DNA from: Pseudomonas aeruginosa PAO1
Lineage (GTDB): Bacteria > Pseudomonadota > Gammaproteobacteria > Pseudomonadales > Pseudomonadaceae
Assembly (NCBI RefSeq): GCF_000006765.1
Contig: NC_002516.2
Length of the DNA stretch: 64,000 nt
Direction: 5' to 3' (one strand)
Made by a program: the position numbers and the translations under genes. The notes under the pieces were generated by a model that had not been told where the DNA came from, searched no databases, and saw nothing but the letters and a program-made list of their open reading frames with translations. Each line of letters opens with the position of its first letter. Position 1 is the stretch's first letter. Shown here piece by piece: positions 6,145-62,880 of the stretch.

Positions 6145-6148
6145 GGCG

Positions 6149-6610: not shown

Positions 6611-6876
6611 GCTGATTCTCCACGGAAAGGCCCGGGCAGGGCGTTATCTCTTATCAGGCAGGGATGCATCGGGCGAAGTGTGCGCGAAGGACGAAACGGA
6701 CGCCTTGCACGATCCTGCGAAAGTCTAGATCAATCCTGCCGAGCGTCCCGGCGGGCACGGCGCGGAAACGCGGCGAAACAACTCCGTCGGCGCAGGCGTT
6801 CACCCGGCATCGGCAACGCGCTAGGATCGCTGCCGTCGGTGACTGACGCCCGCCCGGGCGGCACGCACTTTCAGCC

Positions 6877-6940
6877 GGAAGCGGGACGACCCGTTTTCCC
6901 TCTTTCATTGCGCGGGGACGACCCTGCAGAGAGGCTGAAA
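6877..6940 (+). promoter_or_regulatory. Guanidine-II (mini-ykkC) riboswitch
   Basis: Two GC-rich hairpins with ACGA tetraloops: GCGGG-ACGA-CCCGT (6881-6894) and GCGGGG-ACGA-CCCTGC (6912-6927). They are joined by a pyrimidine-rich linker able to pair with the downstream AGAGG SD, directly before a SugE/Gdx gene. Confidence 0.93.
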
Positions 6941-7264
6941 ATGGCGTGGATCTATCTCTTGCTCGCCGGTGTCTTCGAAATCGTCTGGGCCACGGCCATG
7001 AAGGAGTCGGCCGGCTTCACCCGCCTGTGGCCGAGCCTGGTCACCCTGCTGTTCATGATCCTCAGCTTCGGCCTGCTGGCCGTTTCCATGAAAACCCTGC
7101 CCCTCGGCACGGCCTACACCATCTGGGTCGGCATCGGTGCGGTCGGCGCCTTCGCCCTGGGCATCCTGCTCTTCGGCGAAAGCCCGAGCCCGTTGCGGCT
7201 GCTGGCGGTGGGGCTGATCGTGGCCGGCATCGTCATTCTCAAGCTGGCGACCCGTCAGGGCTGA
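6941..7264 (+). CDS. sugE: SMR-family guanidinium exporter (Gdx/SugE), 107 aa
   Basis: '[17 protein letters not shown]' (membrane Glu), '[14 protein letters not shown]' and 4 TM helices; riboswitch upstream. Confidence 0.92.
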
Positions 7265-7276
7265 GGGGCGACCATC

Positions 7277-7675
7277 ATGTACGCATCCTTCGCTCCCGCG
7301 ACCTGGGCCTTGCTCGCCTACCTCTTCGGCGCGCTCGCCCTTTGCCTGCTCATGCTGGGGTTGGGCCGGGTGCTGGGCGGCCGATCGCATGGCCGGGCGA
7401 AGAACCTGCCGTTCGAGTCGGGGGTGGATTCCACCGGCTCGTCGCGCTTGCGCTTCTCGGTCAAGTACGCGTTGGTCGCCATGCTGTTCGTGATCTTCGG
7501 CATCGAGATGCCGTTCCTCTACCTCTGGGCGGTGTCGCTACGGGAGAATGGCTGGGCGGGTTTCGTCGAGGCGACGCTGTTCGTCTCCCTGCTGCTGGTC
7601 GGACTGTTCTACCTGCACCGGGTCGGCGCCCTCGACTGGTCGCCGGAGCGCCGGCGGAAAAAGCCGCACGACTAG
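7277..7675 (+). CDS. Orphan NADH-quinone oxidoreductase subunit A (NuoA) paralogue
   Basis: '[10 protein letters not shown]', '[11 protein letters not shown]' and '[14 protein letters not shown]' with 3 TM helices. No other nuo genes nearby. Confidence 0.85.
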
Positions 7676-8223
7676 TCGTGGAGGATCACCAGCAGGTAGC
7701 GGCAGGCTTGCCCGGCGGTGGCGAAGGTCACCGCGCGGTCGACGCCGAAGTCCAGGCGGTCGCCGCGTTGCAGGTGGAACGACTGCTCGCCGTAATCCAC
7801 CCGCAGCGCACCCTCGACCAGCCACAGGCGCTGCCGGTAGGGCCGGCCGCCCCAGCGGGGATAGTCGAGGCGGGCGTTCGCCGGGATCTCCACTTCCACC
7901 ATCTCGCAGCCGCTGCGCGGATCGCGAGCGCCGACCTGGCGGCGGCGGTAGCCGCTGGCCGGGTCTTCCCACACTTCCTGCTGCGCGCGCCGGCAGAGCG
8001 GTTCGGCCGGCGCCTGCGCGTCGCCGAGCAGCTCGGAGAGGGCGACCCCCAGGCCGCCGGCGAGACGGCCGAGGACGCTGGCGGTGGGGCTGCTTTGGTT
8101 GCGCTCGATGCGCGAGATCATCGCCTTGCTCACCGCGCAGCGTTCGGCCAGTTGGGCGAGGGTCAGCTCGCGCTCCTTGCGCAGGGCGGCTAGGCGTCGG
8201 GCAATCAGTTCGTCGATATCCAT
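7672..8223 (-). CDS. XRE-family regulator with C-terminal cupin domain, 183 aa
   Basis: HTH '[28 protein letters not shown]' plus a cupin-like C-terminus. Alternative start at 8253. Confidence 0.88.
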
Positions 8224-48328: not shown

Positions 48329-50356
48329 TCAACCGCCGCAGCCGCCGCAACAGCTCTTGGGCGTGGAGCGTTGCAGCAGCTCCTCGTCGCACTTCGGGCA
48401 GAACTCGTGCTCGCCGGCCAGGTAGCCGTGCCGCGGGCAGATCGAGAAGGTGGGGGTGACGGTCAGGTACGGCAGGCGGAAGCGACCGAGGGCGGTGCGC
48501 ACCAGGGTCTTGCAGGCTTCGGCGGAGGAAATCCGCTCGGCCATGTAGAGATGCAGCACGGTGCCGCCGGTGTACTTGCATTGCAGGGCGTCCTGCAGCT
48601 CCAGCGCCTCGAACGGGTCGTCGGTGAAGCCCACCGGCAGTTGCGAGGAGTTGGTGTAGTAGGGCGCCTCCGGCGTGCCGGCCTGGAGGATGCGCGGATA
48701 GCGCTTGCGGTCCTCGCGGGCGAAGCGATAGGTGGTGCCCTCGGCGGGCGTGGCTTCCAGGTTGTAGAGGTGCCCGCTGTCCTCCTGGAAACCCACCAGC
48801 CGCGCGCGCACGTGATCGAGCAGGGCCAGGGCCATCTCGCGCCCGGCTTCGCTGTGCAGTCCCTCGCGGTCGTCGCTGAAGTTGCGCACCATCTCGTGCA
48901 GGCCGTTCACGCCGATGGTGGAGAAATGGTTGCGCAGGGTACCCAGGTAGCGTCGGGTGTAGGGATAGAGGCCGGCATCCATGTGCTGCTGGATCACCTT
49001 GCGCTTCAGCTCCAGGCTGGCGAAGGCGAGTTCGAGCAGGTGGTCGAGCTGGCGGTAGAGGCCGGCGGCGTCGCCACGGTGGCGATAGCCCAGGCGCGCG
49101 CAGTTGATCGTCACCACGCCCAGCGAGCCGGTCTGCTCCGCCGAGCCGAACAGGCCGTTGCCACGCTTGAGCAGTTCGCGCACGTCCAGTTGCAGGCGGC
49201 AGCACATCGAGCGCACCTGGTTGGGCTGCATGTCCGAGTTGAGGAAGTTCTGGAAGTAGGGCAGGCCGTAGCGCGCGGTCATCTCGAACAGGCGCGTGGC
49301 GTTGTCGCTGTCCCAGGGGAAGTCGTGGGTGATGTTGTAGGTCGGGATCGGGAAGGTGAATACCCGGCCGTGGGCATCGCCGGCCTGCATCACCTCGATG
49401 TAGGCGCGGTTGATCAGGTCCATCTCGGCCTGCAGCTCGCCGTAGGCGAAGGGCATCTCCTCGCCGCCGATGCGCGGCACCTGGTCGCGCAGGTCGTCCG
49501 GGCAGACCCAGTCGAAGGTCAGGTTGGTGAAGGGTGTCTGGGTGCCCCAGCGCGACGGCACGTTGAGGTTGTAGATGAACTCCTGGAGGGCCTGGCGCAC
49601 GCTGGCGTAGTCGAGGCGGTCCTTGCGCACGTAGGGCGCCAGGTAGGTATCGAAGGAACTGAAGGCCTGGGCCCCGGCCCACTCGTTCTGCAGGGTGCCG
49701 AGGAAGTTGACCATCTGCCCCAGGGCGCTGCCCAGGTGCTTCGGCGGACCGGCCTCGACCCGCCCCGGCACGCCGTTCAGGCCTTCGTTCAGCAAGGTGC
49801 GCAGCGACCAGCCGGCGCAATAGCCGGCGAGCATGTCGAGGTCGTGGATATGCAGGTCGGCGTCGCGGTGGGCGGCGGCGATGTCGGCATCGTAGACCTC
49901 ATCCAGCCAGTAGTTCGCGGTGACCTTGCCGGATACGTTGAGGATCAGCCCGCCGAGGGAATAGCCCTGGTTGGCGTTGGCGCGCACCCGCCAATCCTCG
50001 CGGGACAGGTATTCGTTCATCGACGCGGCGACGTCCACCAGGGTCTTGCGCTCGCGGCGCAGCCGGCCGTGGCGTTCGCGGTAGACCACGTAGGCGCGCG
50101 CCGTAGGGTAGTGGCCGGCCTCCATCAGCACCCGTTCGACCAGGTCCTGGACCCGTTCGATATCCAGGCAGGCGCGTTCCGGCAGGCGTTCCACCACGCG
50201 TTCGGCGAGCGCCTGCGCCTGCTGCGGGTCGAACTCGCCGGTGGCTTGGCCGGCGGCGGCGATGGCGCGTTCGATCTTGCCGGGATCGAAAGGGACTTCA
50301 CGTCCGTTGCGCTTGAGCAGGGTGGCCGGCCAGGTAGCCTTCCGGGGCTGGGTCAT
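48329..50356 (-). CDS. nrdD: Class III (anaerobic) ribonucleoside-triphosphate reductase catalytic subunit, 675 aa, lacking the glycyl-radical tail
   Basis: ATP-cone 'KRNGREVPFDPGKI', 'GYCAG', finger loop 'SMCCRL', 'NLEATPAE', 'YYTNS' and Zn ribbon 'CPRH...CPKC'. GGAG SD before ATG 50356. Confidence 0.95.
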   Translation of the reverse strand: MTQPRKATWPATLLKRNGREVPFDPGKIERAIAAAGQATGEFDPQQAQALAERVVERLPERACLDIERVQDLVERVLMEAGHYPTARAYVVYRERHGRLRRERKTLVDVAASMNEYLSREDWRVRANANQGYSLGGLILNVSGKVTANYWLDEVYDADIAAAHRDADLHIHDLDMLAGYCAGWSLRTLLNEGLNGVPGRVEAGPPKHLGSALGQMVNFLGTLQNEWAGAQAFSSFDTYLAPYVRKDRLDYASVRQALQEFIYNLNVPSRWGTQTPFTNLTFDWVCPDDLRDQVPRIGGEEMPFAYGELQAEMDLINRAYIEVMQAGDAHGRVFTFPIPTYNITHDFPWDSDNATRLFEMTARYGLPYFQNFLNSDMQPNQVRSMCCRLQLDVRELLKRGNGLFGSAEQTGSLGVVTINCARLGYRHRGDAAGLYRQLDHLLELAFASLELKRKVIQQHMDAGLYPYTRRYLGTLRNHFSTIGVNGLHEMVRNFSDDREGLHSEAGREMALALLDHVRARLVGFQEDSGHLYNLEATPAEGTTYRFAREDRKRYPRILQAGTPEAPYYTNSSQLPVGFTDDPFEALELQDALQCKYTGGTVLHLYMAERISSAEACKTLVRTALGRFRLPYLTVTPTFSICPRHGYLAGEHEFCPKCDEELLQRSTPKSCCGGCGG

Positions 50357-50366
50357 TTCAACTTCT

Positions 50367-50413
50367 CCACAACATGATGTGTTTTGATTTTGCAAAACAA
50401 CAATATGTTGTGG
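50367..50413. promoter_or_regulatory. Tandem NrdR boxes
   Basis: CCACAACATGATGTGT (50367-50382) and CAACAATATGTTGTGG (50398-50413), 31 bp apart; consensus acaCwAtATaTwGtgt. Confidence 0.85.
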
Positions 50414-50440
50414 ATTCTGGCGGGCGACGCCGAGCCGGCG

Positions 50441-50454
50441 TTGATCTGCGTCAG
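50441..50454. promoter_or_regulatory. Anr/Dnr (FNR-type) box upstream of nrdD
   Basis: Minus strand CTGAC-GCAG-ATCAA versus TTGAY-N4-ATCAA; a CAGAAT -10-like hexamer sits at class II spacing (50419-50414). Confidence 0.7.
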
Positions 50455-50513
50455 CGTCCGGCGGATTGCCCGGGTTCCATTGGAGGTATTCCCCGTGCCC
50501 GGGTGACGGCGTA

Positions 50514-51323
50514 TCAGGCCTGGGCGAGGCGGGCGAAGACGACGTAGTTGTCCAACTGCTGCCAGACCGTGGCGGCCTCGGCGAAACCCGCCTGGCGCAG
50601 GGCGGCGAGATGGAAATCGAGCGAGCAGTCTTCGTCTTCGCTGGCGCGCCTGAGCGGGCGCCGCGCGAAATGGGCGTCGCGCTGCGCCTTCAGCGGGGCC
50701 AGCCGGGGGATCTGCGCGGCGCGTTGCCACCAGTCTTCCCAACTGTCCGCGCCGCTGGCCACGGACGCCTGGAGGACCCGCTCGCGGTGCTTCCGGGACA
50801 ATTCCGCGAGTCCCGGCCAGCGTCGGTCGTAGCGCATGTGGTCGGCGTTCAGCAGCACGCCGCCGGGGGCGAGCAGCTCGCCGGCCTGGGCGTAGAACCC
50901 GGCGAGTTCGGCGGGCGACAGCCAGTGCAACGCGGTGGAAGAGAGCAGCGCCGCGGGCCGTTCGCCGGCGAGGGACTCGCGCGCTTCGGCGACCCGTTCG
51001 GTCCAGCCTGGATCGGTGAGGTCGCACTCCACCACGCGGACCCGCTCGGCGAAACCGGCCAGCGCCGTACGCGCGATCTCCAGCAGCATGACGTCGGCGT
51101 CCAGCGCCACCACCCGCGCCGCCGGGAAGCGTTCGAGCAGGCGCCGGCCGAGGGAGCCCGGGCCGCAGGCGGCGTCGATGGCGGTGAAGCGCCCGTCGCG
51201 GCCGAAGAGGTCTTCGAGCAACTGGAACATCGCCTCGTAGCGCTCCTCGCGCTGGCGGATGTAGCCCTCCTGCTGGCGGTCCCAGCGTTCGAGGAGCGCC
51301 ATGATCTGCTCGGTTGCGGTCAT
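50514..51323 (-). CDS. Class I SAM-dependent methyltransferase, 269 aa
   Basis: Motif I 'IDAACGPGS', 'VVALDAD', 'SSTALHWL' and 'PGGVLLNAD'. AGGAGG SD before MTATEQ. Confidence 0.88.
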   Translation of the reverse strand: MTATEQIMALLERWDRQQEGYIRQREERYEAMFQLLEDLFGRDGRFTAIDAACGPGSLGRRLLERFPAARVVALDADVMLLEIARTALAGFAERVRVVECDLTDPGWTERVAEARESLAGERPAALLSSTALHWLSPAELAGFYAQAGELLAPGGVLLNADHMRYDRRWPGLAELSRKHRERVLQASVASGADSWEDWWQRAAQIPRLAPLKAQRDAHFARRPLRRASEDEDCSLDFHLAALRQAGFAEAATVWQQLDNYVVFARLAQA

Positions 51324-51440
51324 CTTTCCTCCTGGGGGGCATGCCCGGTTGAGAGTGGGGTCCTGTGCTTCGAGGGATACGGCGAGCGAGACGTTCCCTC
51401 GCCTCGATGAAGAAGAAACGGCGGGCATTCTTCATTCGAA

Positions 51441-51463
51441 GAAATGTTATGTTATAACTTATA
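51441..51463. promoter_or_regulatory. Zur box in the divergent methyltransferase / TonB receptor promoter
   Basis: GAAATGTTATGTTATAACTTATA versus consensus GAAATGTTATAWTATAACATTTC; strongly AT-rich patch. Confidence 0.82.
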
Positions 51464-51490
51464 AGTATTTATAATTCATACCTGCCGACC

Positions 51491-53452
51491 ATGACCCCCC
51501 ATTCCTCCCCGCACCGTCTTCCTCCGCTGCGGCTGGCCCGCGCCGTGCCGTTCCTCTACCTGCTTCCCTGCCTGGCGCTGGCCGCGCCGGTCGACCTGGA
51601 GCCGACCGTGGTCAGCGCCACCACTACCGAGCGCAAGCTGCGCGACGCCCCGGCCAGCGTTTCGCTGATCGCCGCCGAGGACCTGCGGCGGCGCCCGGTG
51701 CGCGACCTGCAGGAAGCCCTGCGCGGTTCGGAAAGCCTGCAGTTCAACGGCGTCGGCATGTCCCGGCGGGGCATCAGCGTTCGCGGCATGTCCAGCGAGC
51801 ACACCCTGGTGCTGGTGGACGGCCAGCGGATCTCCACCTCGTCCGGGGCCATCGCCCATTCCGACTTCGACCTCGGCTGGGTGCCGGTGGAGAGCATCGA
51901 GCGTATCGAGGTGGTACGCGGACCGATGTCCTCGCTCTACGGTTCGGAAGCCCTCGGCGGGGTGGTGAACGTGATCACCCGGCGCGCCACCGATACCTGG
52001 ACGGGCAGCGGTCTGCTCGATGGCGGCGTGCGCGAGGACGGCCTCGGCGGGCAGAGCCACCAGCTCGGCGCCTATCTCGCCGGGCCGCTGGTGCCCGGCA
52101 AGCTGGGCCTCGCCCTGAACGGCGAGAGCCGCCGCCAGCAGGAAACCCCGGACGCCGATGAGCGCCGACTCTCCGAGCTGGAAGGCGGCAACGCCGACAG
52201 CGGTGGGCTGAACCTCAGCTGGACCCCGGACGACGCCCAGCGCATCGACCTCGGCCACCAGCGCGGGCGCGAACGACGCTGGCGCAACAGCGAGACCGGA
52301 GGGCCGCGCTCGCGCTACTACGAGTCGCGCGACGTGATCGAACGCGAGCGCTGGTCGCTCGCCCACAATGGCCAGTGGGACTGGGGCAGCAGCCAGCTGC
52401 GCACCTACCGCAACCGCCTGGAGCGGCACAACGCGCGTTCCGACGGACAACCGCCGAGCAACCCGCAGCGCCTTACCGACAGCGTGGTCGACGGCCACCT
52501 CAGCGTGCCGGCCTTCGAGCGACATCTCTTCACCCTCGGCGGCGAATGGCGCAAGGAAGAACTGGAGGATCGCTCGGTGAATACCGCCGGCGACGCCAGC
52601 GCGCGACACAAGGCGCTGTTCCTGCAGGACGAGATCGCCTTCGGCCCGGACTGGTCGCTGACCCTCGGCAGCCGCTTCGACAAGCACGAGGCGTTCGGCT
52701 GGGAAAGCAGTCCGCGCCTGTACCTGCTGCACCACCTTTCCGATGTGCTGACCCTGCGCGCCGGCGTCGGCCGCGGCTACAAGGCGCCGAGCCTGAAGCA
52801 GCTATCGCCGGAGTATGCGGCGGTCGGTGGCGGCGGGCGCTTCACCATCTACGGCAATCCCGACCTGAAGCCGGAGACCAATACGTCCTACGAACTGGGC
52901 GCCGACTACCAGGGCGATGGCTGGTCGCTGAAGGGCACGGTGTTCGAGAACGATGTCCGCGACCTGATCCAGACCGTCTGCGTAGCGCGCTGCGGGGTGC
53001 GCGGCGGCGAGATACGCAACTACGAGAACGTCGACAGGGCACGGATCCGCGGCCTCGAGCTGGGCGGCGGCGTGGACCTGCCGGCGGACCTGCGCTGGGA
53101 ACTCAACTACACCTACCTCGACGCGCGCAACCGCACCGCCGGCCAGCGCCTCGGCGATCGCTCCCGGCACCTCGCCAACAGCCAATTGCGCTGGAGCCCC
53201 AATGTCCGCTTCAGCGCCCAGTTGCGCACCGAATACGTCGGCAGCCAGGTGGCCTACAGCAGCAACGTCGGCTACGCCTTGCCGGCCTACAGCCTGTGGC
53301 ACCTGGAGCTGAGCCAGAAACTCAGCGAGAACCTGACGCTGCGCGGCGGCATCGAGAACCTTGGCGACCAGCGCCTGGCCGACGACGACACGCACTTCAC
53401 CTATGCCGAACCTGGGCGGACCTTCCATCTCGGCCTGGTGGCGAGCTTCTGA
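51491..53452 (+). CDS. TonB-dependent receptor (CirA/BtuB-like, no signalling domain)
   Basis: TonB box 'VVSAT', 'RDAPASVS', 'IERIEVVRGPMSSLYGSEALGGVVNVIT' and C-terminal Phe. Confidence 0.95.
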   Translation: MTPHSSPHRLPPLRLARAVPFLYLLPCLALAAPVDLEPTVVSATTTERKLRDAPASVSLIAAEDLRRRPVRDLQEALRGSESLQFNGVGMSRRGISVRGMSSEHTLVLVDGQRISTSSGAIAHSDFDLGWVPVESIERIEVVRGPMSSLYGSEALGGVVNVITRRATDTWTGSGLLDGGVREDGLGGQSHQLGAYLAGPLVPGKLGLALNGESRRQQETPDADERRLSELEGGNADSGGLNLSWTPDDAQRIDLGHQRGRERRWRNSETGGPRSRYYESRDVIERERWSLAHNGQWDWGSSQLRTYRNRLERHNARSDGQPPSNPQRLTDSVVDGHLSVPAFERHLFTLGGEWRKEELEDRSVNTAGDASARHKALFLQDEIAFGPDWSLTLGSRFDKHEAFGWESSPRLYLLHHLSDVLTLRAGVGRGYKAPSLKQLSPEYAAVGGGGRFTIYGNPDLKPETNTSYELGADYQGDGWSLKGTVFENDVRDLIQTVCVARCGVRGGEIRNYENVDRARIRGLELGGGVDLPADLRWELNYTYLDARNRTAGQRLGDRSRHLANSQLRWSPNVRFSAQLRTEYVGSQVAYSSNVGYALPAYSLWHLELSQKLSENLTLRGGIENLGDQRLADDDTHFTYAEPGRTFHLGLVASF

Positions 53453-56400
53453 TGCGCCGTTCGCTACTCTTCTGCGGCGCGCTGCTGGCCAGTCTCTGTG
53501 CCTGGGCGGAGCCGGCCCAGGTGCGTCTGCTCAGCAGCGATTTCGTCCTCCCGGGCAAGCACCAGCGCCTAGCCGGTTGGGCGCGCGAGGCCGGTGTCGA
53601 GTTGCGCGGCCTGCGCCTCGGCATCGGCGAGGCGCCGCCCGGCGAGTGGCTGGACGGCGGCAACCTGCTGATCCTCGACACGCCGCGGCCGACCGATCGC
53701 GCCCAGGTCGAGGAGGCGCTGGGCGAGCGCTTGCAAGGCGGGACGCAACCCTGGATCCGCGTCGGCGGCGGTCCGCCGGGTTTCGGCAACCTGCCGGCGG
53801 CGCTGGGCGGGCGCCTGGTCGGCTACTACGCGAACGGCGGCGAAGCCAACCTGCGCCGGCTGTTCGAGGCGGTCCGACGCTGGCATGCCGGCCTGACCGT
53901 CGACGCGTTGCCGGCGCCGCAGCCCCTGGCGCAGGCCGGCTTCTATCATCCCGACGCACCGGCGCCGTTCGCCGTCCTCGCCGACTACCTGGCCTGGGGC
54001 GCCTCGCGCTGGGCCAGCGATGCCCCGCGCATCGCCTTCCTGATCCCGCGCGGCGCCATCGCCGACGCCCAGACCGGCGCCATCGACGAACTGTTGCGGC
54101 GTAGCGAGCGGCACGGCCAGGCGCCGCTGGCGGTGTGGTTCGACGACAGCGATCCGGAGGCGTTGAGGAAGTCCTTCGCTGGCGCCGATGTCCAGGCGCT
54201 GGTCAACCTGCAGCACCTGCAGAACGGCCCGGCGCGCCGTGCCGAGTTCCTCGCGCTGGACGTGCCGGTATTGCAGACCCTCGGCTACCGCGACGGCAAC
54301 GAGGCCGACTGGCTGGCCGCCGCCAGCGGGGTGGCGCCGCGTACCGCGGCGGCCTTCCTCGGCATGCCGGAAACCTGGGGAATGAGCGATCCGCTGGTGA
54401 TCAGCGCCCTGGAGAACGGCGAGCCGAAGCTGATGGCCGGGCAGGCCGAGGCCCTGCTGGACAAGCTCGACCGGCTGCTGCGCCTGCGTCGCCTGCCGGC
54501 GGCGGACAAGCACCTGGCGCTGATGTTCTGGAACCACCCGGAGGGCGAGAAGAACGTCGCCGCCTCGCATCTCAATGTACCGGCCAGCCTGGCCCGTCTC
54601 GGCGAAGCGCTGCGGGCGGCCGGCTACCGGGTTGCGACGAGCGACGAAAGCGCGCTGATCGATACCGCCCAGCGCCTGCTCGGCGGCTACTACCGGCCGC
54701 AGACCCTGGACGCGCTGTATCGCGACGGCCTCGCCGCGAGCCTGCCGCTGGACGCCTACCTGCACTGGTTCGAGGCGCTGCCGGCGGATCTGCGCGAGGA
54801 GATGCGCGCGCGCTGGGGCGACCCGCGTCGACATTGGGCCTTGCGCGATATCGACGGCCAGCGACGCTTCGTGTTCCCGGCGGCGCGCCTGGGTAATCTG
54901 CTGCTGTTGCCGCAGCCGCCGCGCGCCGGCCGTCCGGGCGAGGCCTACCACGACAGCGCGGTGCCGCCGGACCATCTCTACCTGGCGGTCTACCAGTTCG
55001 TCCGCGAGGGTTTCGGCGCCGACGCGCTGATCCATTTCGGCACCCATGGCACCCAGGAATGGCTACCCGGCAAGGACCGCGGGCTGGCGGTGGGCGACTA
55101 CCCGCTGCGGGCGCTCGGCGACCTGCCGGTGTTCTACCCGTACATCCAGGACAACGTTGGCGAGGCGATCCAGGCGCGCCGGCGCGGGCGCGCGGTCACC
55201 GTCAGCCACCAGACGCCGTCGTTCGCCCCGGCCGGGCTGTACGACGAACTGCGCGACCTGCACCAGTTGATCCACGAATACCAGCAACTGGACGAGGGCG
55301 CGGTGCGCGAACGCAGCGCCGAGCAGATCCGCGCGGCGGTGCGGGCGGCGCACATGAACGACGACCTGGGCTGGAGCGAGGCAGCGATGCACGAGGATTT
55401 CCCGGCGTTCCTCGGCGTGCTCCACGACCACCTGCACCGACTGGCCGGCTCGGCGATGCCGCTGGGGCTGCACACCTTCGGTGTCGCCGCCTCGCCGGAG
55501 CTGCGCCTGGGCACCGTCATGCAGCAGCTCGGCGAGCCCTACTACCGCGCGCTCGGTCTCGACCCCGACGAACTGTTCGCCGCCGATTTCAGGGCGCTGC
55601 GGGAAGGTCGTGCCTACCGCACACTGCAACGCTACCTGCGCGACGGTGGCGAGATCGCCAAGGTGGCCGATCCGCGCCTGCGCGAGCAGTTGCTGCGCGC
55701 CCGCGAACTGGACCGCCAGCTCGCCGACACCGGCGAACTGGAGGCGCTGCTCGCCGGCCTCGCCGGGCGCTTCGTCGCGCCCGGGCCGGGCGGCGATCCG
55801 ATCCGCAATCCGCAGGTACCCAGCGGGCGCAACCTGTTCGCCTTCGAGGCCGACAAGGTACCGACCCGCGCCGCCTACGAAGCCGGCGCCGAGGCCTTCG
55901 GCCAACTGCTGGAAAGCTACCGCGCCGAGCACCAGGGCAGGGCGCCGGAAAAGCTCGCCTTCAGCCTCTGGTCGTCGGAAACCATGCGCCACCTGGGCAT
56001 CGTCGAAAGCCAGGCGCTGCACGCCCTCGGCCTGCGCCCGCGCTGGGACGCCGGTGGCCGCCTGCTGGCGCTGGACATCGTGCCGGCGGCGGAACTGGGG
56101 CGTCCACGGGTGGACGTGGTGCTACAGGTGACCAGTGTCTACCGCGACCAGTTCGACGGCTTCATGCGCCTGCTCGCCGAGGCCATCGAGCGCCTCGCCG
56201 CGCTGGACGAGCCGGGCAACCCGCTGGCGCGCAACAGCCAGGCGCTGGAGCGGCGCCTGCGCGAACGCGGCGTCGAAGCGCCACTGGCGCAGCGCCTGTC
56301 GCGCCTGCGGCTGTTCGGCAATGCGCCGGGCGACTACGGCACCGGGGTAACGCAACTGACCCTCGATTCCACCCGCTGGGACGACGACTCGGCGCTCGCC

Positions 56401-57297
56401 GAGCAGTTCCTCGGGCGCTTGCAGTACGCCTACGGCAGTCGCGACTGGGGCGTGAAGCTGGATGGCGGCAACCTGTTCGCCGAACAGTTGAAGGGTGTAC
56501 AGGCGGCGATCCTCTCGCGCTCCTCGACGCTCAACGGCGTGCTCTCCACCGACCACCCGTTCGAGTACCTCGGCGGCCTGTCGCTGGCGGTACGCCACCT
56601 CGACGGCGCCAGCCCGGCGCTGTACATCGCCGACCTGCGCCAGCGCCAGCCGCGCACCACGGCCGCCGCGCAGTTCCTCGCCAGCGAGCTGCGCGGGCGC
56701 TACCTCAGCCCGCAGTGGATCGCCGCGATGCAGCGCGAGGGCTACGCCGGCAGCCTGGAAATGCTCGACCTGGCCAACAACCTGTGGGGCTGGCAGGCGG
56801 CGGATCGCATCATGGTCCGCGCCGACCAGTGGCAGGCGTTGCACGACACCTTCGTCATGGACCGCCGCGAGCTGGGTCTCGCCGAGTGGTTCGAAACGCA
56901 CAATCCGACCGCCCAGGCGCAGATCATCGCGCGCATGGCCGAGGCCATCCGCAAGGGCTACTGGGACGCCAGCGAGCAGACCCGCCGCGAACTGGCCGAG
57001 CGCTGGCGGCAACTGGCGGCCGCCGGCGCCGGCGAGGTCGGCGCGGCGACCACCCGTGAATTCATCGAACGGATGGCCGGCGGTTTCGGCGAGGCCGCGG
57101 CGCAGGCAGAGGGCGCGGCCGCGTCCGGTGCCGGCGAAACGGTCAGCGGCCGCGTCCTCGAAGAAGTCGCGCCGCCGCCGTCCGGCGAGCCGCAGCCCTG
57201 GCTCCGGCTGGCCGCCGCCGTGCTGCTCGCGCTGTTCGCCGCCGGCGCCGTCCGGCAATCCGTAGTCAATCGTCGTCCGATGGAAAATCGCTCATGA
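53452..57297 (+). CDS. CobN/magnesium chelatase-family protein with signal peptide and C-terminal TM anchor, 1281 aa
   Basis: 'HFGTHGTQEWLPGK', 'YPYIQDNVGEA..ARRRG', 'PSGRN' and 'RPRVDVV'. ATG overlaps the receptor stop (TGATG). Confidence 0.9.
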   Translation: MRRSLLFCGALLASLCAWAEPAQVRLLSSDFVLPGKHQRLAGWAREAGVELRGLRLGIGEAPPGEWLDGGNLLILDTPRPTDRAQVEEALGERLQGGTQPWIRVGGGPPGFGNLPAALGGRLVGYYANGGEANLRRLFEAVRRWHAGLTVDALPAPQPLAQAGFYHPDAPAPFAVLADYLAWGASRWASDAPRIAFLIPRGAIADAQTGAIDELLRRSERHGQAPLAVWFDDSDPEALRKSFAGADVQALVNLQHLQNGPARRAEFLALDVPVLQTLGYRDGNEADWLAAASGVAPRTAAAFLGMPETWGMSDPLVISALENGEPKLMAGQAEALLDKLDRLLRLRRLPAADKHLALMFWNHPEGEKNVAASHLNVPASLARLGEALRAAGYRVATSDESALIDTAQRLLGGYYRPQTLDALYRDGLAASLPLDAYLHWFEALPADLREEMRARWGDPRRHWALRDIDGQRRFVFPAARLGNLLLLPQPPRAGRPGEAYHDSAVPPDHLYLAVYQFVREGFGADALIHFGTHGTQEWLPGKDRGLAVGDYPLRALGDLPVFYPYIQDNVGEAIQARRRGRAVTVSHQTPSFAPAGLYDELRDLHQLIHEYQQLDEGAVRERSAEQIRAAVRAAHMNDDLGWSEAAMHEDFPAFLGVLHDHLHRLAGSAMPLGLHTFGVAASPELRLGTVMQQLGEPYYRALGLDPDELFAADFRALREGRAYRTLQRYLRDGGEIAKVADPRLREQLLRARELDRQLADTGELEALLAGLAGRFVAPGPGGDPIRNPQVPSGRNLFAFEADKVPTRAAYEAGAEAFGQLLESYRAEHQGRAPEKLAFSLWSSETMRHLGIVESQALHALGLRPRWDAGGRLLALDIVPAAELGRPRVDVVLQVTSVYRDQFDGFMRLLAEAIERLAALDEPGNPLARNSQALERRLRERGVEAPLAQRLSRLRLFGNAPGDYGTGVTQLTLDSTRWDDDSALAEQFLGRLQYAYGSRDWGVKLDGGNLFAEQLKGVQAAILSRSSTLNGVLSTDHPFEYLGGLSLAVRHLDGASPALYIADLRQRQPRTTAAAQFLASELRGRYLSPQWIAAMQREGYAGSLEMLDLANNLWGWQAADRIMVRADQWQALHDTFVMDRRELGLAEWFETHNPTAQAQIIARMAEAIRKGYWDASEQTRRELAERWRQLAAAGAGEVGAATTREFIERMAGGFGEAAAQAEGAAASGAGETVSGRVLEEVAPPPSGEPQPWLRLAAAVLLALFAAGAVRQSVVNRRPMENRS

Positions 57298-57770
57298 ATG
57301 GTCTGGAAACCAGCCTCTACGAACTCACCCGCCTGTTCCTGCTGCCGGTGCTGCTGTTGATCCTCGCCGCGCTGGCCTACGCCTTCGTCGCCCTCGGCGG
57401 CTTCGCCATGGAAGCCTGGCAGCGCCGTCGCGGGCGCTACCGCTCGCGCCTGGCGGCCTGGCAGGCGCTGCATGGCGGCAACAGCGACGACCTCGAACTG
57501 TGGATCATGCAGCGCCTGGAATGGCTGCGGATCACCTCGCGCAGCGCGCCGATGCTCGGCCTGGTGGCGACCATGATCCCCATGGGGCCGGCGCTGCTGG
57601 CGCTGACCCGCAACGACGCCCAGGGGATCGGCGAGAACCTGGTGGTGGCGTTTTCCGCGGTGATCCTGGCCCTGGTCGCCGCCAGCATCACCTTCTTCAT
57701 CCTCACCGTGCGTCGCCGCTGGCTGCTCCAGGAACTGCGCGCCGTCGAACGTGCGCGGGAGGCCGGCTGA
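57294..57770 (+). CDS. MotA/TolQ/ExbB proton-channel family protein
   Basis: 'SAPMLGLVATMIPMGPAL' and 'ENLVVAFSAVILAL'; ATGA-coupled. Confidence 0.85.
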   Translation: MNGLETSLYELTRLFLLPVLLLILAALAYAFVALGGFAMEAWQRRRGRYRSRLAAWQALHGGNSDDLELWIMQRLEWLRITSRSAPMLGLVATMIPMGPALLALTRNDAQGIGENLVVAFSAVILALVAASITFFILTVRRRWLLQELRAVERAREAG

Positions 57771-58096
57771 TGCGCTTCCTCGAACACGACGAGGCGGACG
57801 ACCCGATCCTCTCGATGGTCAACCTGATCGACCTGTTCCTGGTGGTGATCGGCATCCTCCTGATCGTCATCGTGCAGAACCCGCTCAACCCATTCAGCCA
57901 GGACAAGGTGGTGGTGGTCGAGAACCCCGGCGAGGCGGACATGCGCATGCTGGTCAAGGACGGCAAGGAGCTGAAGCGCTACCAGGCCAGCGGCGAGATC
58001 GGCGAAGGGCAGGGCAGCCGCGCCGGAGTGACCTACCGCTTGGCCGACGGACGGATGATCTACGTGCCGGAGAGCGGCGGGGAGGCCGGCAAGTAG
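57770..58096 (+). CDS. DUF2149-like ExbD/MotB-like single-pass protein, 108 aa
   Basis: 'DDPILSMVNLIDLFLV' and C-terminal 'G..YRLADG..IYVPE'; TGATG coupling. Confidence 0.82.
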   Translation: MRFLEHDEADDPILSMVNLIDLFLVVIGILLIVIVQNPLNPFSQDKVVVVENPGEADMRMLVKDGKELKRYQASGEIGEGQGSRAGVTYRLADGRMIYVPESGGEAGK

Positions 58097-58176
58097 CGAC
58101 GCGTACGGCGGAGAGCTGGGACTTTTGCCCGGAGTTCCCGGATAATGGCCGGTTTCCGTTTCTCTTGGTGCTCGCC

Positions 58177-60447
58177 GTGGAAGTAAAGGTCAATTTTCTC
58201 GATAACCTTCGACTGGAAGCCAGGTTCGATGATTTCACGGTGATCGCCGACCAGCCGATCCGCTACAAGGGCGACGGCTCCGCGCCGGGGCCGTTCGACT
58301 ACTTCCTGGCGTCGTCGGCGCTGTGTGCCGCCTACTTCGTCAAGCTGTACTGCCAGACGCGCAACATCCCCACCGACAACATACGCCTGTCGCAGAACAA
58401 CATCGTCGACCCGGAGAACCGCTACCGGCAGATCTTCAAGATCCAGGTGGAACTGCCGGCCGACATCTCGGAGAAGGACCGCCAGGGCATCCTCCGCTCC
58501 ATCGACCGTTGCACGGTGAAGAAGGTGGTGCAGACCGGACCCGAGTTCGTCATCGAGGAGGTCGACAACCTCGATGCCGACGCCCAGGCACTGCTGATGC
58601 CCGGCACCGATGCCGCCGGCTGCACGCGCATCCCGGGCAAGGACCTGCCGCTGGAGCAGACCATCGCCAACCTGTCGGCCATCCTCGCCGGCCTCGGCAT
58701 GAAGATCGAGATCGCCTCCTGGCGCAACATCGTGCCCAACGTCTGGTCGCTGCACATCCGCGATGCGCAGTCGCCGATGTGCTTCACCAACGGCAAGGGC
58801 GCGAGCAAGGAAAGCGCGCTGGCCTCGGCGCTGGGCGAATTCATCGAGCGGCTGAACTGCAACTTCTTCTACAACGACCAGTACTGGGGAGAAGAGATCG
58901 CCAATGCGGCGTTCGTCCATTACCCGGACGAACGCTGGTTCAAGCCCGGCCGCGACGATGCGCTGCCGCTGGGACTGCTCGACGGCCATTGCCTGGCGAT
59001 CTACGACCCCGACGGCGAGCTGCGTGGCTCGCACCTGTACGACACCAACTCGGGCAACGTGCAGCGCGGTATCTGCGCCTTGCCCTTCGTGCGCCAGTCC
59101 GACGGCCAGGTGGTGTATTTCCCCTCCAACCTGATCGAGAACCTCTACCTCAGCAACGGCATGAGCGCCGGCAATACCCTGGCCGAAGCGCAGGTGCAGT
59201 GCCTGTCGGAGATCTTCGAGCGCGCGGTCAAGCGGCAAATCCTCGAAGGCGAGCTGGCGCTGCCGGACGTGCCGCCGGAGGTGCTGGCCAAGTACCCGGG
59301 CATCCTCGCCGGGATCCGCGGCCTGGAAGAGCAGGGCTTCCCGGTACTGGTCAAGGACGCCTCGCTGGGCGGCGAATTCCCGGTGATGTGCGTGACCCTG
59401 ATGAATCCGCGCACCGGTGGCGTGTTCGCTTCCTTCGGCGCCCACCCGAGCTTCGAGGTGGCCCTGGAGCGCAGCCTGACCGAACTACTCCAGGGGCGCA
59501 GCTTCGAAGGCCTGAACGACCTGCCCCAGCCGACCTTCGAAAGCCATGCGCTGACCGAGCCGAACAACTTCGTCGAGCATTTCATCGATTCCAGCGGCGT
59601 GGTGTCCTGGCGCTTCTTCAGCGCCAAGGCCGATTTCCCGTTCGTCGAGTGGGACTTCACCCGGCAGGGCGAGGCTGCCAACGCCGAGGAAGCCGCGACC
59701 CTGTTCGGCATCCTCGAAGCCATGGGCAAGCAGGTCTACATGGCGGTGTACGAGCACCTCGGCGCTACGGCCTGCCGGATCCTGGTGCCGGGCTACTCGG
59801 AAATCTATCCGGTGGAAGACCTGATCTGGGACAACACCAACAAGGCCCTGGCGTTCCGCGAGGACATCCTCAACCTGCACCGCCTCGACGACGCCGCGCT
59901 CGGGGCGTTGCTGGAGCGCCTGGAAGACTGCGAGGTGGACGACTACACCGACATCACCACGCTGATCGGCGTCGAGTTCGACGACAACACGGTCTGGGGC
60001 CAACTGACCATCCTCGAGCTGAAAGTGCTCATCGGCCTCGCCCTGAAGCGCTTCGAAGACGCCAAGGAAGGCGTGGAGGCGTTCCTCCAGTACAACGACA
60101 ACAGCGTCGAGCGCGGCCTGTTCTACCAGGCGCTGAACGTGGTGCTGGAGGTCGTCCTCGACGACGAGCTGGAGATCGCCGACTACGAGGCCAATTTCCG
60201 CCGCATGTTCGGCGACGCGCGGATGGATGCCGCGCTGGGCTCGGTGGACGGCAGCGTGCGCTTCTTCGGCCTGACGCCGACCAGCATGAAGCTGGAAGGG
60301 CTCGACCGGCACCTGCGGCTGATCGACAGCTACAAGAAGCTGCACGCGGCGCGAGCCAGGATGCAGCCCGTGGTCGACGGCGAGGCCGGCGCTGCCGCGG
60401 CTGGCGGTCTCAAGCCTCGGCGCATGGCGATCCGCAAGCGCAAGTGA
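58177..60447 (+). CDS. OsmC-domain / YcaO-domain fusion protein (~756 aa; GTG start inferred)
   Basis: OsmC 'DQP...G.GSAPGP...LASSALC' and 'IDRCTV'; YcaO 'TNGKG', 'SALGEFIER' and 'SNGMSAGNT..EA......EIFER'. Confidence 0.85.
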   Translation: MEVKVNFLDNLRLEARFDDFTVIADQPIRYKGDGSAPGPFDYFLASSALCAAYFVKLYCQTRNIPTDNIRLSQNNIVDPENRYRQIFKIQVELPADISEKDRQGILRSIDRCTVKKVVQTGPEFVIEEVDNLDADAQALLMPGTDAAGCTRIPGKDLPLEQTIANLSAILAGLGMKIEIASWRNIVPNVWSLHIRDAQSPMCFTNGKGASKESALASALGEFIERLNCNFFYNDQYWGEEIANAAFVHYPDERWFKPGRDDALPLGLLDGHCLAIYDPDGELRGSHLYDTNSGNVQRGICALPFVRQSDGQVVYFPSNLIENLYLSNGMSAGNTLAEAQVQCLSEIFERAVKRQILEGELALPDVPPEVLAKYPGILAGIRGLEEQGFPVLVKDASLGGEFPVMCVTLMNPRTGGVFASFGAHPSFEVALERSLTELLQGRSFEGLNDLPQPTFESHALTEPNNFVEHFIDSSGVVSWRFFSAKADFPFVEWDFTRQGEAANAEEAATLFGILEAMGKQVYMAVYEHLGATACRILVPGYSEIYPVEDLIWDNTNKALAFREDILNLHRLDDAALGALLERLEDCEVDDYTDITTLIGVEFDDNTVWGQLTILELKVLIGLALKRFEDAKEGVEAFLQYNDNSVERGLFYQALNVVLEVVLDDELEIADYEANFRRMFGDARMDAALGSVDGSVRFFGLTPTSMKLEGLDRHLRLIDSYKKLHAARARMQPVVDGEAGAAAAGGLKPRRMAIRKRK

Positions 60448-60579: not shown

Positions 60580-62880
60580 ATGGCCCTGGCCCACACTCTC
60601 GGCTTCCCACGCATCGGACGCGATCGCGAACTGAAAAAAGCCCAGGAAGCGTTCTGGAAGGGCGAGCTGGACGAGGCCGGCCTGCGGGCCGTCGGTCGGC
60701 AGCTGCGCGCTGCCCACTGGCAGGTACAGAAGGATGCCGGCATCCAGTTGCTGCCGGTCGGCGATTTCGCCTGGTATGACCAGGTGCTGACCCATTCGCT
60801 GACCTTCGGCGTGATCCCCGAGCGCTTCCGGGCGCACGGCGAGGCCGGGCCGACCCTGCATACCCTGTTCGGCATGGCCCGTGGCGTCAGCGACGACAGT
60901 TGTTGCGGCGGTGCCCATGCCCAGGAAATGACCAAGTGGTTCGACACCAACTATCACTACCTGGTCCCCGAGTTCAGCGCCGATCAGCAGTTCCAGCTGA
61001 GCTGGGAACAACTGTTCGAGGAGGTCGACGAGGCCAGGGCCCTCGGCCACCAGGTGAAGCCGGTGCTGATCGGTCCGCTGACCTACCTGTGGCTGGGCAA
61101 GGCCAAGGGCGCCGAGTTCGACAGGCTCGACCTGCTGGACCGCCTGCTGCCGCTCTACGGCCAGATCTTCCGTCGTCTCGCCGGCCAGGGCGTGGAGTGG
61201 GTGCAGATCGACGAGCCGATCCTGGTCCTCGACCTGCCGCAGGCATGGAAGAATGCCTTCGAGCGCGCCTACAACCTGCTACAGAGCGAGCCGCTGAAGA
61301 AGCTGGTCGCCACCTACTTCGGCGGCCTGGAAGACAACCTGGGCCTGGCCGCCAACCTCCCGGTGGACGGCCTGCACATCGACCTGGTGCGAGCGCCGGA
61401 ACAGTATCCGAGCATCCTCGACCGCCTGCCGGCCTACAAGGTCGTCTCGCTGGGCCTGGTCAACGGGCGCAACGTCTGGCGCTGCGACCTGGAGAAAGCC
61501 CTGGAGGTGGTGCGCCATGCCCGGGAGCGCCTGGGCGAGCGGCTGTGGGTCGCGCCGTCCTGCTCGCTGCTGCACAGCCCGGTGGACCTGGAACGCGAAG
61601 ACGGGCTGGACGCCGAGCTGAAGAGCTGGCTGGCCTTCGCCGTGCAGAAGTGCCGCGAAGTCGCGGTGCTGGCCCGTGCCGCCACTGAGCCGGAAGCCGC
61701 CGAGGTGCTTGCCGCCCTGGAAGAGAGCCGTGCGGTCCAGGCCAGCCGCGCTTCCTCGCCGCGAATCCACAAGCCGGCCGTGCAGGCGCGCCTGGCCGCG
61801 ATCAAGGCCAGCGACGCCCAGCGTCGCTCGCCGTTCGCCGAACGCATCGCCAGGCAGCGTGCCGGGCTCGACCTGCCGGCGTTCCCGACCACTACCATCG
61901 GCTCTTTCCCGCAGACCTCGTCGATCCGCCTGGCCCGCCAGTCGTTCAAGCAGGGCAAGCTGAGCGAGGCCGAGTACATCGAGGCGATGCACAGCGAGAT
62001 CCGCCATGCGGTGCAGATCCAGGAACAACTGGGGCTGGACGTGCTGGTACATGGCGAAGCCGAGCGCAACGACATGGTCGAGTACTTCGCCGAGCAACTG
62101 GACGGCTACGTCTTCACCCGCTTCGGCTGGGTGCAGAGCTACGGCTCGCGCTGCGTGAAGCCGGCGGTGATCTATGGCGACCTGAGCCGTCCGCGGGCCA
62201 TGACCGTGGAGTGGATCAGGTACGCCCAGAGCCTTACCGACAAGGTGATGAAGGGCATGCTGACCGGCCCGGTGACCATGCTGATGTGGTCCTTCCCGCG
62301 CGAGGACGTGTCTCGCGAGGTGCAGGCGCGCCAGTTGGCCCTGGCGATCCGCGACGAAGTGGTCGACCTGGAGGCCGCCGGCATCAGGATCGTGCAGATC
62401 GACGAGGCGGCTTTCCGCGAAGGCCTGCCGCTGCGCCGCAACGCCTGGCCGCACTATCTGGAGTGGGCCACCGAGGCCTTCCGCCTGTGCGCCTCCGGAG
62501 TCCGCGACGAAACCCAGATCCATACGCACATGTGCTACAGCGAGTTCAACGATGTGATCGAGTCCATCGCCGCCATGGACGCCGACGTGATCACCATCGA
62601 GACCTCGCGTTCGGACATGGAGCTGCTGGAGGCTTTCGAGCAGTTCGACTACCCGAACGAGATCGGTCCGGGCGTCTACGACATCCACTCGCCACGCGTG
62701 CCGAGCCGGGAAGAGATCGTCGCGTTGCTGCGCAAGGCGGCCCGGCGGATACCCGCCGAGCGGCTCTGGGTCAACCCGGACTGCGGCCTGAAGACCCGCG
62801 CCTGGCCGGAAACCGAGGCAGCGCTGGTGAACATGGTCGCCGCGGCCCGCGAACTGCGTGGCGACCTCGCCCGCGGTTGA
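60580..62880 (+). CDS. metE: Cobalamin-independent methionine synthase
   Basis: 'GFPRIG..RELK', 'KWFDTNYHY', '[10 protein letters not shown]', Zn ligands 'HTHMCYSE' and '[11 protein letters not shown]'. Confidence 0.97.

Follow-up and report, generated by a model that had tools for sequence, protein, structure and literature searches.

The closest described relatives of the locus analysed here are the haem-uptake operons of Bacteroidota, in which hmuYRSTUV encodes HmuY, a TonB-dependent receptor, the CobN-like protein HmuS, a hypothetical protein, the MotA/ExbB-type protein HmuU and the DUF2149 protein HmuV (PMC11681262). HmuS of Bacteroides thetaiotaomicron was described in 2025 as a membrane-bound haem dechelatase, with its key residues defined by cryo-EM and mutagenesis (PMC12583661). 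We analysed a 64-kb stretch of the Pseudomonas aeruginosa PAO1 chromosome (64,000 nucleotides, the window hereafter; G+C about 68%) that carries a four-gene operon with the same core set of genes. From gene order, the PAO1 numbering and agreement with what has been published on the operon, we take these genes to be PA1922-PA1925. A cluster of 4795 P. aeruginosa proteins matches the CobN-like protein with 99% identity, and the locus is the Zur-repressed operon PA1922-PA1925 of this species. We propose that PA1922-PA1925 is a periplasmic metal-stripping module for zinc starvation and a Zur-regulated paralogue of a haem-dechelation cassette, a reading that we find plausible but hold at slightly less than an even chance.

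The operon lies on the plus strand behind a Zur box (GAAATGTTATGTTATAACTTATA, 51441-51463) that it has in common with the divergent gene PA1921. Its first gene encodes a TonB-dependent receptor of 653 amino acids with a signal peptide (PA1922, 'cirA'; 51491-53452; Pfam Plug and TonB barrel), followed by a CobN/HmuS-family protein of the class I chelatase fold (PA1923; 1281 amino acids; 53452-57297; PF02514, E-value 1e-298), predicted to be exported and tethered at its C-terminus. The last two genes encode a putative mini MotA/TolQ/ExbB-like proton-channel subunit of 158 amino acids with three transmembrane helices (PA1924; 57294-57770; PF01618, 27.5 bits against a cut-off of 22.9) and a DUF2149 protein of 108 amino acids (PA1925; 57770-58096; PF09919, 95 bits). 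Stop and start codons overlap at each junction, as TGATG between the receptor and CobN-like genes, as ATGA between the CobN-like and MotA-like genes and again as TGATG between the MotA-like and DUF2149 genes. A preliminary description of this stretch, which reported a Zur box followed by four translationally coupled genes, was therefore accurate on this point. It had also pointed out that no CobS/CobT or ChlI/ChlD ATPase is nearby, and we found no gene for an AAA+ chelatase partner within about 8 kb of the operon.

We scanned one genome per species, confirmed at least 590 relatives among the matches examined and analysed the best 80 loci, referred to below as the zinc clade. At least 80 species of alpha-, beta- and gamma-proteobacteria carry the four-gene cassette. 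A MotA-like gene follows the CobN-like gene in 78 of the 80 loci and a DUF2149 gene is present in 76, the exceptions being contig ends, while a CirA-like receptor lies upstream in about 72. The CirA-like receptor is missing from seven loci of Bradyrhizobiaceae, Bosea and Methylorubrum (L014, L016, L018, L027, L042, L066 and L069), all of which keep the trio of CobN-like, MotA-like and DUF2149 genes; six of these seven also keep the Zur box. In Bradyrhizobium (L014, 5618-7990) an unrelated TonB-dependent receptor of 790 amino acids takes its place, a case of non-orthologous receptor replacement. Clustering of 1097 open reading frames (ORFs) from the 80 loci revealed no further conserved gene, whether for TonB, a binding protein or an inner-membrane transporter. 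Some copies of the zinc clade and of related clades are carried on large secondary replicons or plasmids, for example in Azospirillum brasilense (NZ_CP012918.1, 11710-15285; 62% identity), in keeping with the patchy occurrence of the cassette among Pseudomonas.

Control by Zur is well documented in P. aeruginosa: binding to the PA1922 promoter was demonstrated by electrophoretic mobility shift assay (PMC8531726), the operon has a predicted Zur site and its expression rises 44- to 147-fold when znuA is mutated (PMC4542158), and the PA1922, PA1923 and PA1925 proteins were detected under Zn depletion only (PMC11761036). The 13-nucleotide core of the box, GTTATGTTATAAC, occurs at a single site in the window, where about 0.07 chance matches are expected; being near-palindromic, it is found on both strands at that site. 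A TATAAT hexamer at 51470-51475 (plus strand), 15 nucleotides 5' of the receptor ATG, is the only good candidate for a -10 element, although a consensus promoter scan returned no full -35/-10 pair upstream of the receptor gene. No Shine-Dalgarno sequence is visible in 51470-51490, ahead of the receptor ATG, and the operon may be transcribed with a leader that is very short or absent.

Zur-type boxes extend across the zinc clade. A Zur position weight matrix scores at least 15 bits upstream of 68 of 77 zinc-clade loci, the matrix having been trained on the same loci that were scored. We therefore added a test with a fixed, literature-style Zur consensus that is independent of the training set; it finds at least 14 of 20 matches in 63 of the 77 loci versus 1 of 192 control windows, which mitigates the circularity. 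Zur control of PA1922 has been said to be restricted to P. aeruginosa (PMC10393844), a statement contradicted by Zur-type boxes at 63-68 of 77 loci across Proteobacteria. Fur boxes (at least 14 of 19 matches) are found at none of the 77 loci. A cobalamin riboswitch was considered as an alternative regulator and rejected, none being found in the window, in seven diverse zinc-clade loci or in two loci of the sister clade introduced below. In Stutzerimonas (L013 of Stutzerimonas stutzeri, 5074-7993, and also L004, L005 and L015) the Zur box stands further upstream, before an rpmE2-like gene (a zinc-independent L31 paralogue) that precedes the receptor, and dksA2-like and COG0523 GTPase genes are divergent beside the box; with these neighbours, the cassette there lies inside a compact Zur-regulon island.

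PA1923 matches PF02514 (CobN-Mg_chel) with 994 bits over residues 124-1177. Among PDB sequences, HmuS (394 bits) is about as similar to it as true CobN (385 bits), and ChlH follows with 355 bits. The protein carries a predicted Sec-type signal peptide (MRRSLLFCGALLASLCAWA|E, residues 1-19, cleavage at AWA|E; 53452-53508), an Ala/Gly/Pro-rich, presumably flexible linker leading from the chelatase body to the anchor (residues about 1186-1248; 57007-57195) and, by hydropathy, a C-terminal transmembrane helix (residues 1249-1267; 57196-57252), all on the plus strand. The basic tail after this helix, RQSVVNRR, is predicted to be cytoplasmic, and both cysteines of PA1923 lie inside the signal peptide. 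Orthologues with readable N-termini have comparable signal peptides. The N-terminal MRR suggested Tat export as a candidate, which was rejected: of 32 orthologues with a readable N-terminus only 12 have an RR pair, and because it is not conserved we consider the signal to be of the Sec type. A superfamily search of 1.84 billion representative proteins yielded 4506 relatives, and nearly all of the 150 nearest representatives have both the N-terminal and the C-terminal hydrophobic segments, which points to a large extracytoplasmic CobN-like clade. The signal peptide and C-terminal anchor of the preliminary description, and the periplasm-facing orientation it drew from them, are thus predicted throughout the clade, and the body of PA1923 is predicted to lie outside the cytoplasm, anchored to the membrane.

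This topology bears on whether PA1923 could instead be a second CobN that takes part in making B12, or a chelatase that works in the forward direction and loads metal onto a secreted periplasmic ligand. One pathway table (PMC7857532) has the protein as cobN2, and the NCBIfam equivalog model for cobaltochelatase subunit CobN (NF004644) assigns it that name with 2327 bits, far above the cut-off of 1248. The same model is also passed by the protein of the Fur-type sister cassette (1385 bits). As both the Zur-type and the Fur-type periplasmic proteins pass it, the CobN product name is probably wrong for the exported clade, and NF004644 appears to cover a periplasmic clade whose members are not proven cobaltochelatases. 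Beyond the signal peptide and the membrane tether, no CobS/CobT or other cob genes lie near any of the loci, control is by Zur and not by B12, and the CobN-type motif of domain V is replaced. To our knowledge, the periplasm holds no ATP for the forward reaction of a class I chelatase. We regard biosynthetic or forward chelation by PA1923 as highly improbable.

Alignment of PA1923 with CobN, ChlH and HmuS locates two catalytic motifs. In domain III, HFGTHGTQEWLPGK (H528, H532 and E536; 55033-55074, plus strand) is common to the superfamily, and H532, within HFGTHG, aligns with HmuS His-538, which is essential for dechelation (PMC12583661). In domain V, LSTDHPFEYLGG (56542-56577, plus strand) places D1034, H1035 and E1038 at the positions of HmuS Asp-1208, His-1209 and Glu-1212. 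The corresponding segment is LSLDHVYEFMGG in HmuS, DSDDY(F/Y)Q in the two solved structures of CobN and DVSHYFD in ChlH, so that PA1923 has S-T-D-H-P-F-E where CobN has D-S-D-D-Y-x-Q. HFGTHG and LSTDHPFEYLGG are invariant in the clade, with the D-H..E form present in all 80 zinc-clade loci, and a motif LSLDHxxEFMGG, with His-1209 and Glu-1212, has been described as defining the HmuS family (PMC12583661). Six of nine mapped HmuS cleft residues are identical in PA1923, namely H532, E571, S841, D1034, H1035 and E1038 (His-538, Glu-577, Ser-1014, Asp-1208, His-1209 and Glu-1212 in HmuS). At the other mapped positions T894 replaces Ser-1067 conservatively, Ser replaces Gln-1198 with the neighbouring Ser kept, and N1028 replaces Trp-1202. 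His255, invariant in the PA1923 clade, may or may not correspond to HmuS His-254.

The nearest clade with the D-D..Q form of domain V allowed a direct comparison of regulation and neighbourhood. We sampled 82 of its loci, from Cupriavidus, Alicycliphilus, Zoogloea and metagenomes, and scored boxes in 56. Gene order is that of the zinc clade (TonB-dependent receptor, CobN-like, MotA-like, DUF2149), the CobN-like protein is 41-48% identical to the zinc-clade protein with the same predicted topology, and D-D..Q (DDPFQYLGG) is present in 81 of 82 loci. A Zur matrix score of at least 15 bits is reached by none of the 56 sister loci versus 68 of the 77 in the zinc clade, whereas a Fur-type box (at least 14 of 19 matches) is present in 16 of the 56 versus about 1.5% of controls. 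A gene for a ChaN-type haem-binding protein accompanies 18 of 82 sister loci versus none of 80 zinc-clade loci. The one Cupriavidus receptor tested scores above curated cut-offs for haem/haemoglobin receptors and is preceded by a clear Fur box. These features make the sister cassette a candidate proteobacterial Hmu-like haem system, and its CobN-like protein a candidate haem dechelatase in aerobic Betaproteobacteria. The cassettes of Cupriavidus necator (L081, 4550-12751), Alicycliphilus denitrificans (L083) and L084-L163 appear to be uncharacterised Hmu-like loci in their own right; at L105, L108, L117, L120, L154 and L162 an extra 2-3 kb separates the CobN-like and MotA-like genes, indicating inserted genes.

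At 208 of 228 strongly conserved positions the zinc and iron-type clades are identical, and the remaining 20 are fixed switches, which include, from zinc to iron type, H1035D, E1038Q, Q892S, S895G and H255I. This pattern fits a scaffold and cleft that stayed the same while the metal site was retuned. Since the nearest sister is of the iron/haem type, the same machine retuned for zinc starvation is the most economical reading of PA1922-PA1925.

Published work sees the operon differently, as a suspected importer of unchelated zinc or cobalt, a role stated or assumed in several papers (PMC4542158, PMC10393844, PMC11761036), and assigns no function to its CobN-like gene. Were free ions imported, PA1922 would be a ZnuD-like gate for Zn2+/Co2+, PA1923 a periplasmic acceptor or chaperone passing the ion on to ZnuA or another importer, and PA1924/PA1925 an auxiliary ExbBD pair. 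The rise of cobalt in a znuA mutant (PMC4542158) is in keeping with this, His255 and His1035, both specific to the clade, could simply bind Zn, and the cassette has no inner-membrane transporter, so metal must pass to general importers anyway. The receptor fits such a role poorly: PA1922 has no His-rich ZnuD-type loop, with a single HH pair in 653 amino acids, and ZnuD is not among the best 25 of its 33 NCBIfam matches. A 140-kDa chelatase fold that keeps the whole motif set of the tetrapyrrole cleft, and 208 of 228 conserved positions, would be a costly chaperone, and the sister cassette is tied to haem by the haem-type receptor of Cupriavidus, its ChaN genes and its Fur boxes. On balance free-ion import seems to us unlikely, though not negligible.

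The nearest solved structure to PA1922 is E. coli CirA (391 bits), followed at a distance by BtuB (103 bits) and PhuR (97 bits). A catecholate ligand was considered on the strength of this likeness. The candidate is weakened by the same receptor type in the Fur-type sister and by the report that overexpression of PA1922 does not sensitise cells to siderophore-drug conjugates (PMC5971595). PA1922 is 41% identical to the receptor of the sister cassette of Alicycliphilus; a CirA-like receptor therefore belongs to the cassette type and need not mean a catecholate.

Cobalt itself could be the metal sought, if an imported cobalt chelate (a corrinoid, a Co-porphyrin or another) were stripped and the cobalt substituted for zinc in enzymes or spared it. 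Import of pyochelin-cobalt is reported for the Zur-regulated receptor system PA2911-14, as is relief of zinc-starvation phenotypes by cobalt (PMC13083405); the metal accumulates in a znuA mutant (PMC4542158), and the fold of PA1923 is that of a cobaltochelatase. The absence of a cobalamin riboswitch from the window and seven diverse orthologous loci, the replacement of the CobN-type D-D..Q by D-H..E in the clade and the regulation by Zur in nearly all species speak against it, and we judge cobalt scavenging to be decidedly unlikely.

If PA1922-PA1925 is a metal-stripping module, a course of five steps can be outlined. When zinc is scarce Zur leaves its box and the four genes are co-translated, a step demonstrated in the literature. 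The receptor would then import a metal chelate, for which a metallated tetrapyrrole is the likeliest candidate, for instance a Zn-porphyrin or possibly a Co-tetrapyrrole. In the periplasm, the Sec-exported enzyme of the CobN/HmuS fold, tethered to the inner membrane by a linker of about 60 residues and a C-terminal helix, would remove the metal at the central cleft formed by His532 and Asp1034-His1035-x-x-Glu1038, as the identity with the HmuS motif suggests. As the cassette itself encodes no inner-membrane transporter, the freed Zn2+ (or Co2+) would enter through the general importers under Zur control, ZnuABC among them. The last step is the weakest: the mini ExbB-like protein and the DUF2149 protein would probably form a small proton-driven stator that couples the proton-motive force either to the receptor or to the tethered enzyme, where it would help to hand over substrate or release product. 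We infer the tetrapyrrole nature of the substrate, the choice between Zn and Co, the reverse direction of the reaction and the ExbB-like coupling.

The two proteins of the putative stator are the best conserved parts of the cassette, with 57-98% identity among orthologues. PA1924 has an invariant PMLGLVATMIPMGPAL and a GLxxT..P.GP motif in its second transmembrane helix. The top 50 Foldseek matches of its AlphaFold2 model (predicted local distance difference test score, pLDDT, 90) are all ExbB, TolQ, PomA, MotA or ZorA, with low TM-scores of 0.32-0.49 and E-values of at least 0.015, and a profile search against PDB sequences came back empty. On the Pfam match and the fold search, we classify PA1924 as a distant, shortened member of the MotA/TolQ/ExbB family, about 70 residues shorter than ExbB/TolQ and without most of the ExbB cytoplasmic domain. 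PA1925 is predicted to have a single N-terminal transmembrane helix (residues 12-36) followed by a beta-rich periplasmic domain; S15, N18 and D21 are invariant, and Asp21 lies within the membrane helix. A single N-terminal transmembrane helix with an invariant Asp is typical of ExbD, TolR and MotB. As a candidate ExbD homologue, DUF2149 gave no usable match by any route: a Pfam scan at E-values up to 10 returned DUF2149 only, a PDB profile search detected no similarity to ExbD/TolR, and Foldseek on an AlphaFold2 model of pLDDT 60 returned noise. Of the ExbB/ExbD-like pair claimed in the preliminary description, the ExbB half stands on PF01618 and the fold matches, while for DUF2149 the 'ExbD-like' label refers to predicted topology and the invariant membrane Asp only.

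What this pair would drive can be argued in two directions. It may serve the receptor, PA1924/PA1925 substituting for ExbB/ExbD while a housekeeping TonB opens PA1922; this concerns the last step and is compatible with the first four. The published model of HmuS has HmuU/V powering the receptor HmuR, and without HmuU/V purified HmuS completes one or two turnovers (PMC12583661); PA1922 has a TonB-box-like PTVVSAT. Yet the trio of CobN-like, MotA-like and DUF2149 genes stays intact in Bradyrhizobiaceae and Cupriavidus, where the receptor type has changed, the cassette is not accompanied by a tonB gene, the cytoplasmic domain of ExbB is largely missing from PA1924, DUF2149 cannot be recognised as ExbD, and these two small proteins are conserved better than the rest of the cassette. 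Service to the receptor is possible in our view, though we lean against it. We infer that the pair may instead couple the proton-motive force to the enzyme, because it is strictly linked to the CobN-like gene despite the change of receptor, because there is no AAA+ partner and because purified HmuS alone is reported at one or two turnovers. We speculate that the tethered CobN-like protein is the stator's partner in place of TonB/TolA. The boldest form of this idea, in which the mini-ExbB and DUF2149 proteins directly drive a periplasmic (de)chelatase through its C-terminal tether in place of an AAA+ motor, and the zinc clade lets Proteobacteria pirate the zinc of Zn-porphyrins from the environment or a host, appears to us rather improbable.

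Several observations weigh against the metal-stripping reading. A FastTree phylogeny built from 127 full-length representatives together with the window protein shows a monophyletic PA1923 clade nested among periplasmic clades with D-D..Q, and the HmuS-like sequences occupy a distant branch. Because the two clades are not sisters, the D-H..E that they have in common is either convergent or ancestral, and in the PA1923 clade it may be convergent. The haem-type sister uses D-D..Q, and the motif is therefore no simple marker of metal or of direction. The N-terminal 330 residues or so of PA1923 have no chelatase match among PDB sequences, the site-1 haem ligands of HmuS could not be located in it, and the Met-rich insertion of HmuS is missing (19 Met in 1281 amino acids). 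HmuS requires NADH-dependent reduction of haem (PMC12583661), a step with no obvious counterpart for redox-inert Zn. By sequence, the receptor is closest to the catecholate receptor CirA and not to haem or B12 receptors. As to the stator, the single or double turnover of HmuS without HmuU/V implies that it is not strictly needed for the chemistry, and PA1925 shows no detectable similarity to ExbD/TolR. To these points are added the published role as an importer of free ions, the shared training set of the Zur matrix, and the fact that we found no experiment linking the operon to any substrate.

Set against this, the idea of a dechelatase put forward in the preliminary description is reasonable and now better founded, by the match to the HmuS motif, the conserved Zur control and the iron/haem-type sister. 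It is not wholly new, as an Azospirillum homologue has already been named 'CobN-like chelatase BtuS for metalloporphyrine salvage' in one source. Literature searches by locus tag and keyword found no functional study of the operon and no link to HmuS. The locus, its regulation and the precedent chemistry were known; what is new is the link from the Zur operon to HmuS, the phylogenetically wide Zur control and the contrast between the Zur-type cassette and its Fur-type sister.

The gene on the other side of the Zur box, PA1921, encodes a methyltransferase dependent on S-adenosylmethionine (SAM) (50514-51323, minus strand; Pfam Methyltransf_25), with a probable start at about 51323, after GGAGGA. 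It is reported to be under Zur control and to be 15-fold up in a znuA mutant (PMC4542158). Membership of PA1921 in the system, perhaps in the role of a ChlM-like partner, was considered and rejected, the gene being missing from all 163 related loci, P. paraeruginosa included. Two longer frames are listed upstream on the same strand. One, an ORF of 360 amino acids (50353-51435) with an apparent gap of 55 bp to the receptor, was rejected as a spurious Arg/Pro-rich frame; the other is 50514-51428, where the true divergent gene is the class I SAM methyltransferase PA1921. The adjoining genes are nrdG and nrdD, which lie upstream, the SAM methyltransferase, an OsmC-YcaO fusion and metE. The OsmC-YcaO fusion ORF (57751-60447, plus strand; probable start at about 58178) lies directly downstream of the operon, and metE (60580-62880), for the cobalamin-independent, zinc-dependent methionine synthase, comes after it. 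We found no link of OsmC-YcaO, metE, nrdD or nrdG to the operon, and these neighbours are not conserved at the other loci. Elsewhere in the window, the G+C fraction falls to 0.58-0.60 at about 22000-26000 versus about 0.68 in the remainder, and this segment may have been acquired. The sole Rfam match in the window is a Guanidine-II (mini-ykkC) riboswitch at 6878-6926 (plus strand; 43.4 bits versus a gathering score of 32).

Few operons of P. aeruginosa are induced as strongly by zinc starvation as PA1922-PA1925, which has been without an assigned mechanism for more than 10 years. Stripping of metalloporphyrins, if true, would add a new substrate class to bacterial zinc acquisition, with a bearing on nutritional immunity and on zinc cycling in soil and rhizosphere. 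The newly discovered dechelatase chemistry of HmuS would then reach beyond gut anaerobes and iron, into aerobic Proteobacteria and to a second metal. The Zur-type and Fur-type cassettes, with their 20 fixed differences, constitute a natural experiment on the metal tuning of the class I chelatase fold, and the always-linked stator pair raises the question of whether the proton-motive force can replace the AAA+ motor of the CobN/ChlH enzyme family. Should the stator drive a (de)chelatase and the zinc clade pirate Zn-porphyrins, 5:2 motors would have a third kind of client and bacterial zinc acquisition a route that had gone unrecognised. The automatic name 'cobaltochelatase subunit CobN' is probably misleading for the whole clade.

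Among known systems, the Bacteroidota hmu operon (HmuS, PDB 9d26) offers the closest comparison, and the resemblance noted in the preliminary description holds for the gene set of hmuYRSTUV. The likeness lies in the core set of a TonB-dependent receptor, an anchored extracytoplasmic protein of the CobN fold, a MotA/ExbB-like protein and a DUF2149 protein, and further in six catalytic residues, the lack of an AAA+ partner and induction by metal starvation. PA1922-PA1925 differs in its regulation by Zur, in having neither a HmuY hemophore nor HmuT nor the Met-rich insertion, in an N-terminal head and neck that cannot be aligned and in its separate branch of the tree. PA1923 is predicted to have a cleavable signal peptide and a C-terminal anchor, where HmuS has predicted N- and C-terminal helices. 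The Fur-type sister cassette is set apart from the zinc clade by Fur-like boxes, by ChaN genes at some loci and by D-D..Q together with 18 further fixed switches.

With CobN and ChlH, PA1923 has in common the PF02514 fold and the HxGxHG...E...PGK motif. Those enzymes are cytoplasmic, are driven by AAA+ ATPases (CobS/CobT and ChlI/ChlD, respectively) and are encoded in biosynthetic clusters, a context that PA1923 does not have. The 5:2 stators ExbB-ExbD, TolQ-TolR and MotA-MotB resemble PA1924 in PF01618, the three transmembrane helices and the motif of the second helix, and PA1925 in its transmembrane Asp; PA1924 is shorter, with TM-scores of about 0.4, PA1925 has no detectable similarity to ExbD/TolR, and no gene for a TonB/TolA-like partner is present. 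ZnuD, CntO/pseudopaline and the pyochelin-cobalt system PA2911-14 are likewise Zur-repressed, TonB-dependent uptake systems feeding the periplasmic zinc pool. PA1922-PA1925 stands apart from all three in combining such a receptor with a periplasmic protein of the chelatase fold and a putative stator pair of its own.

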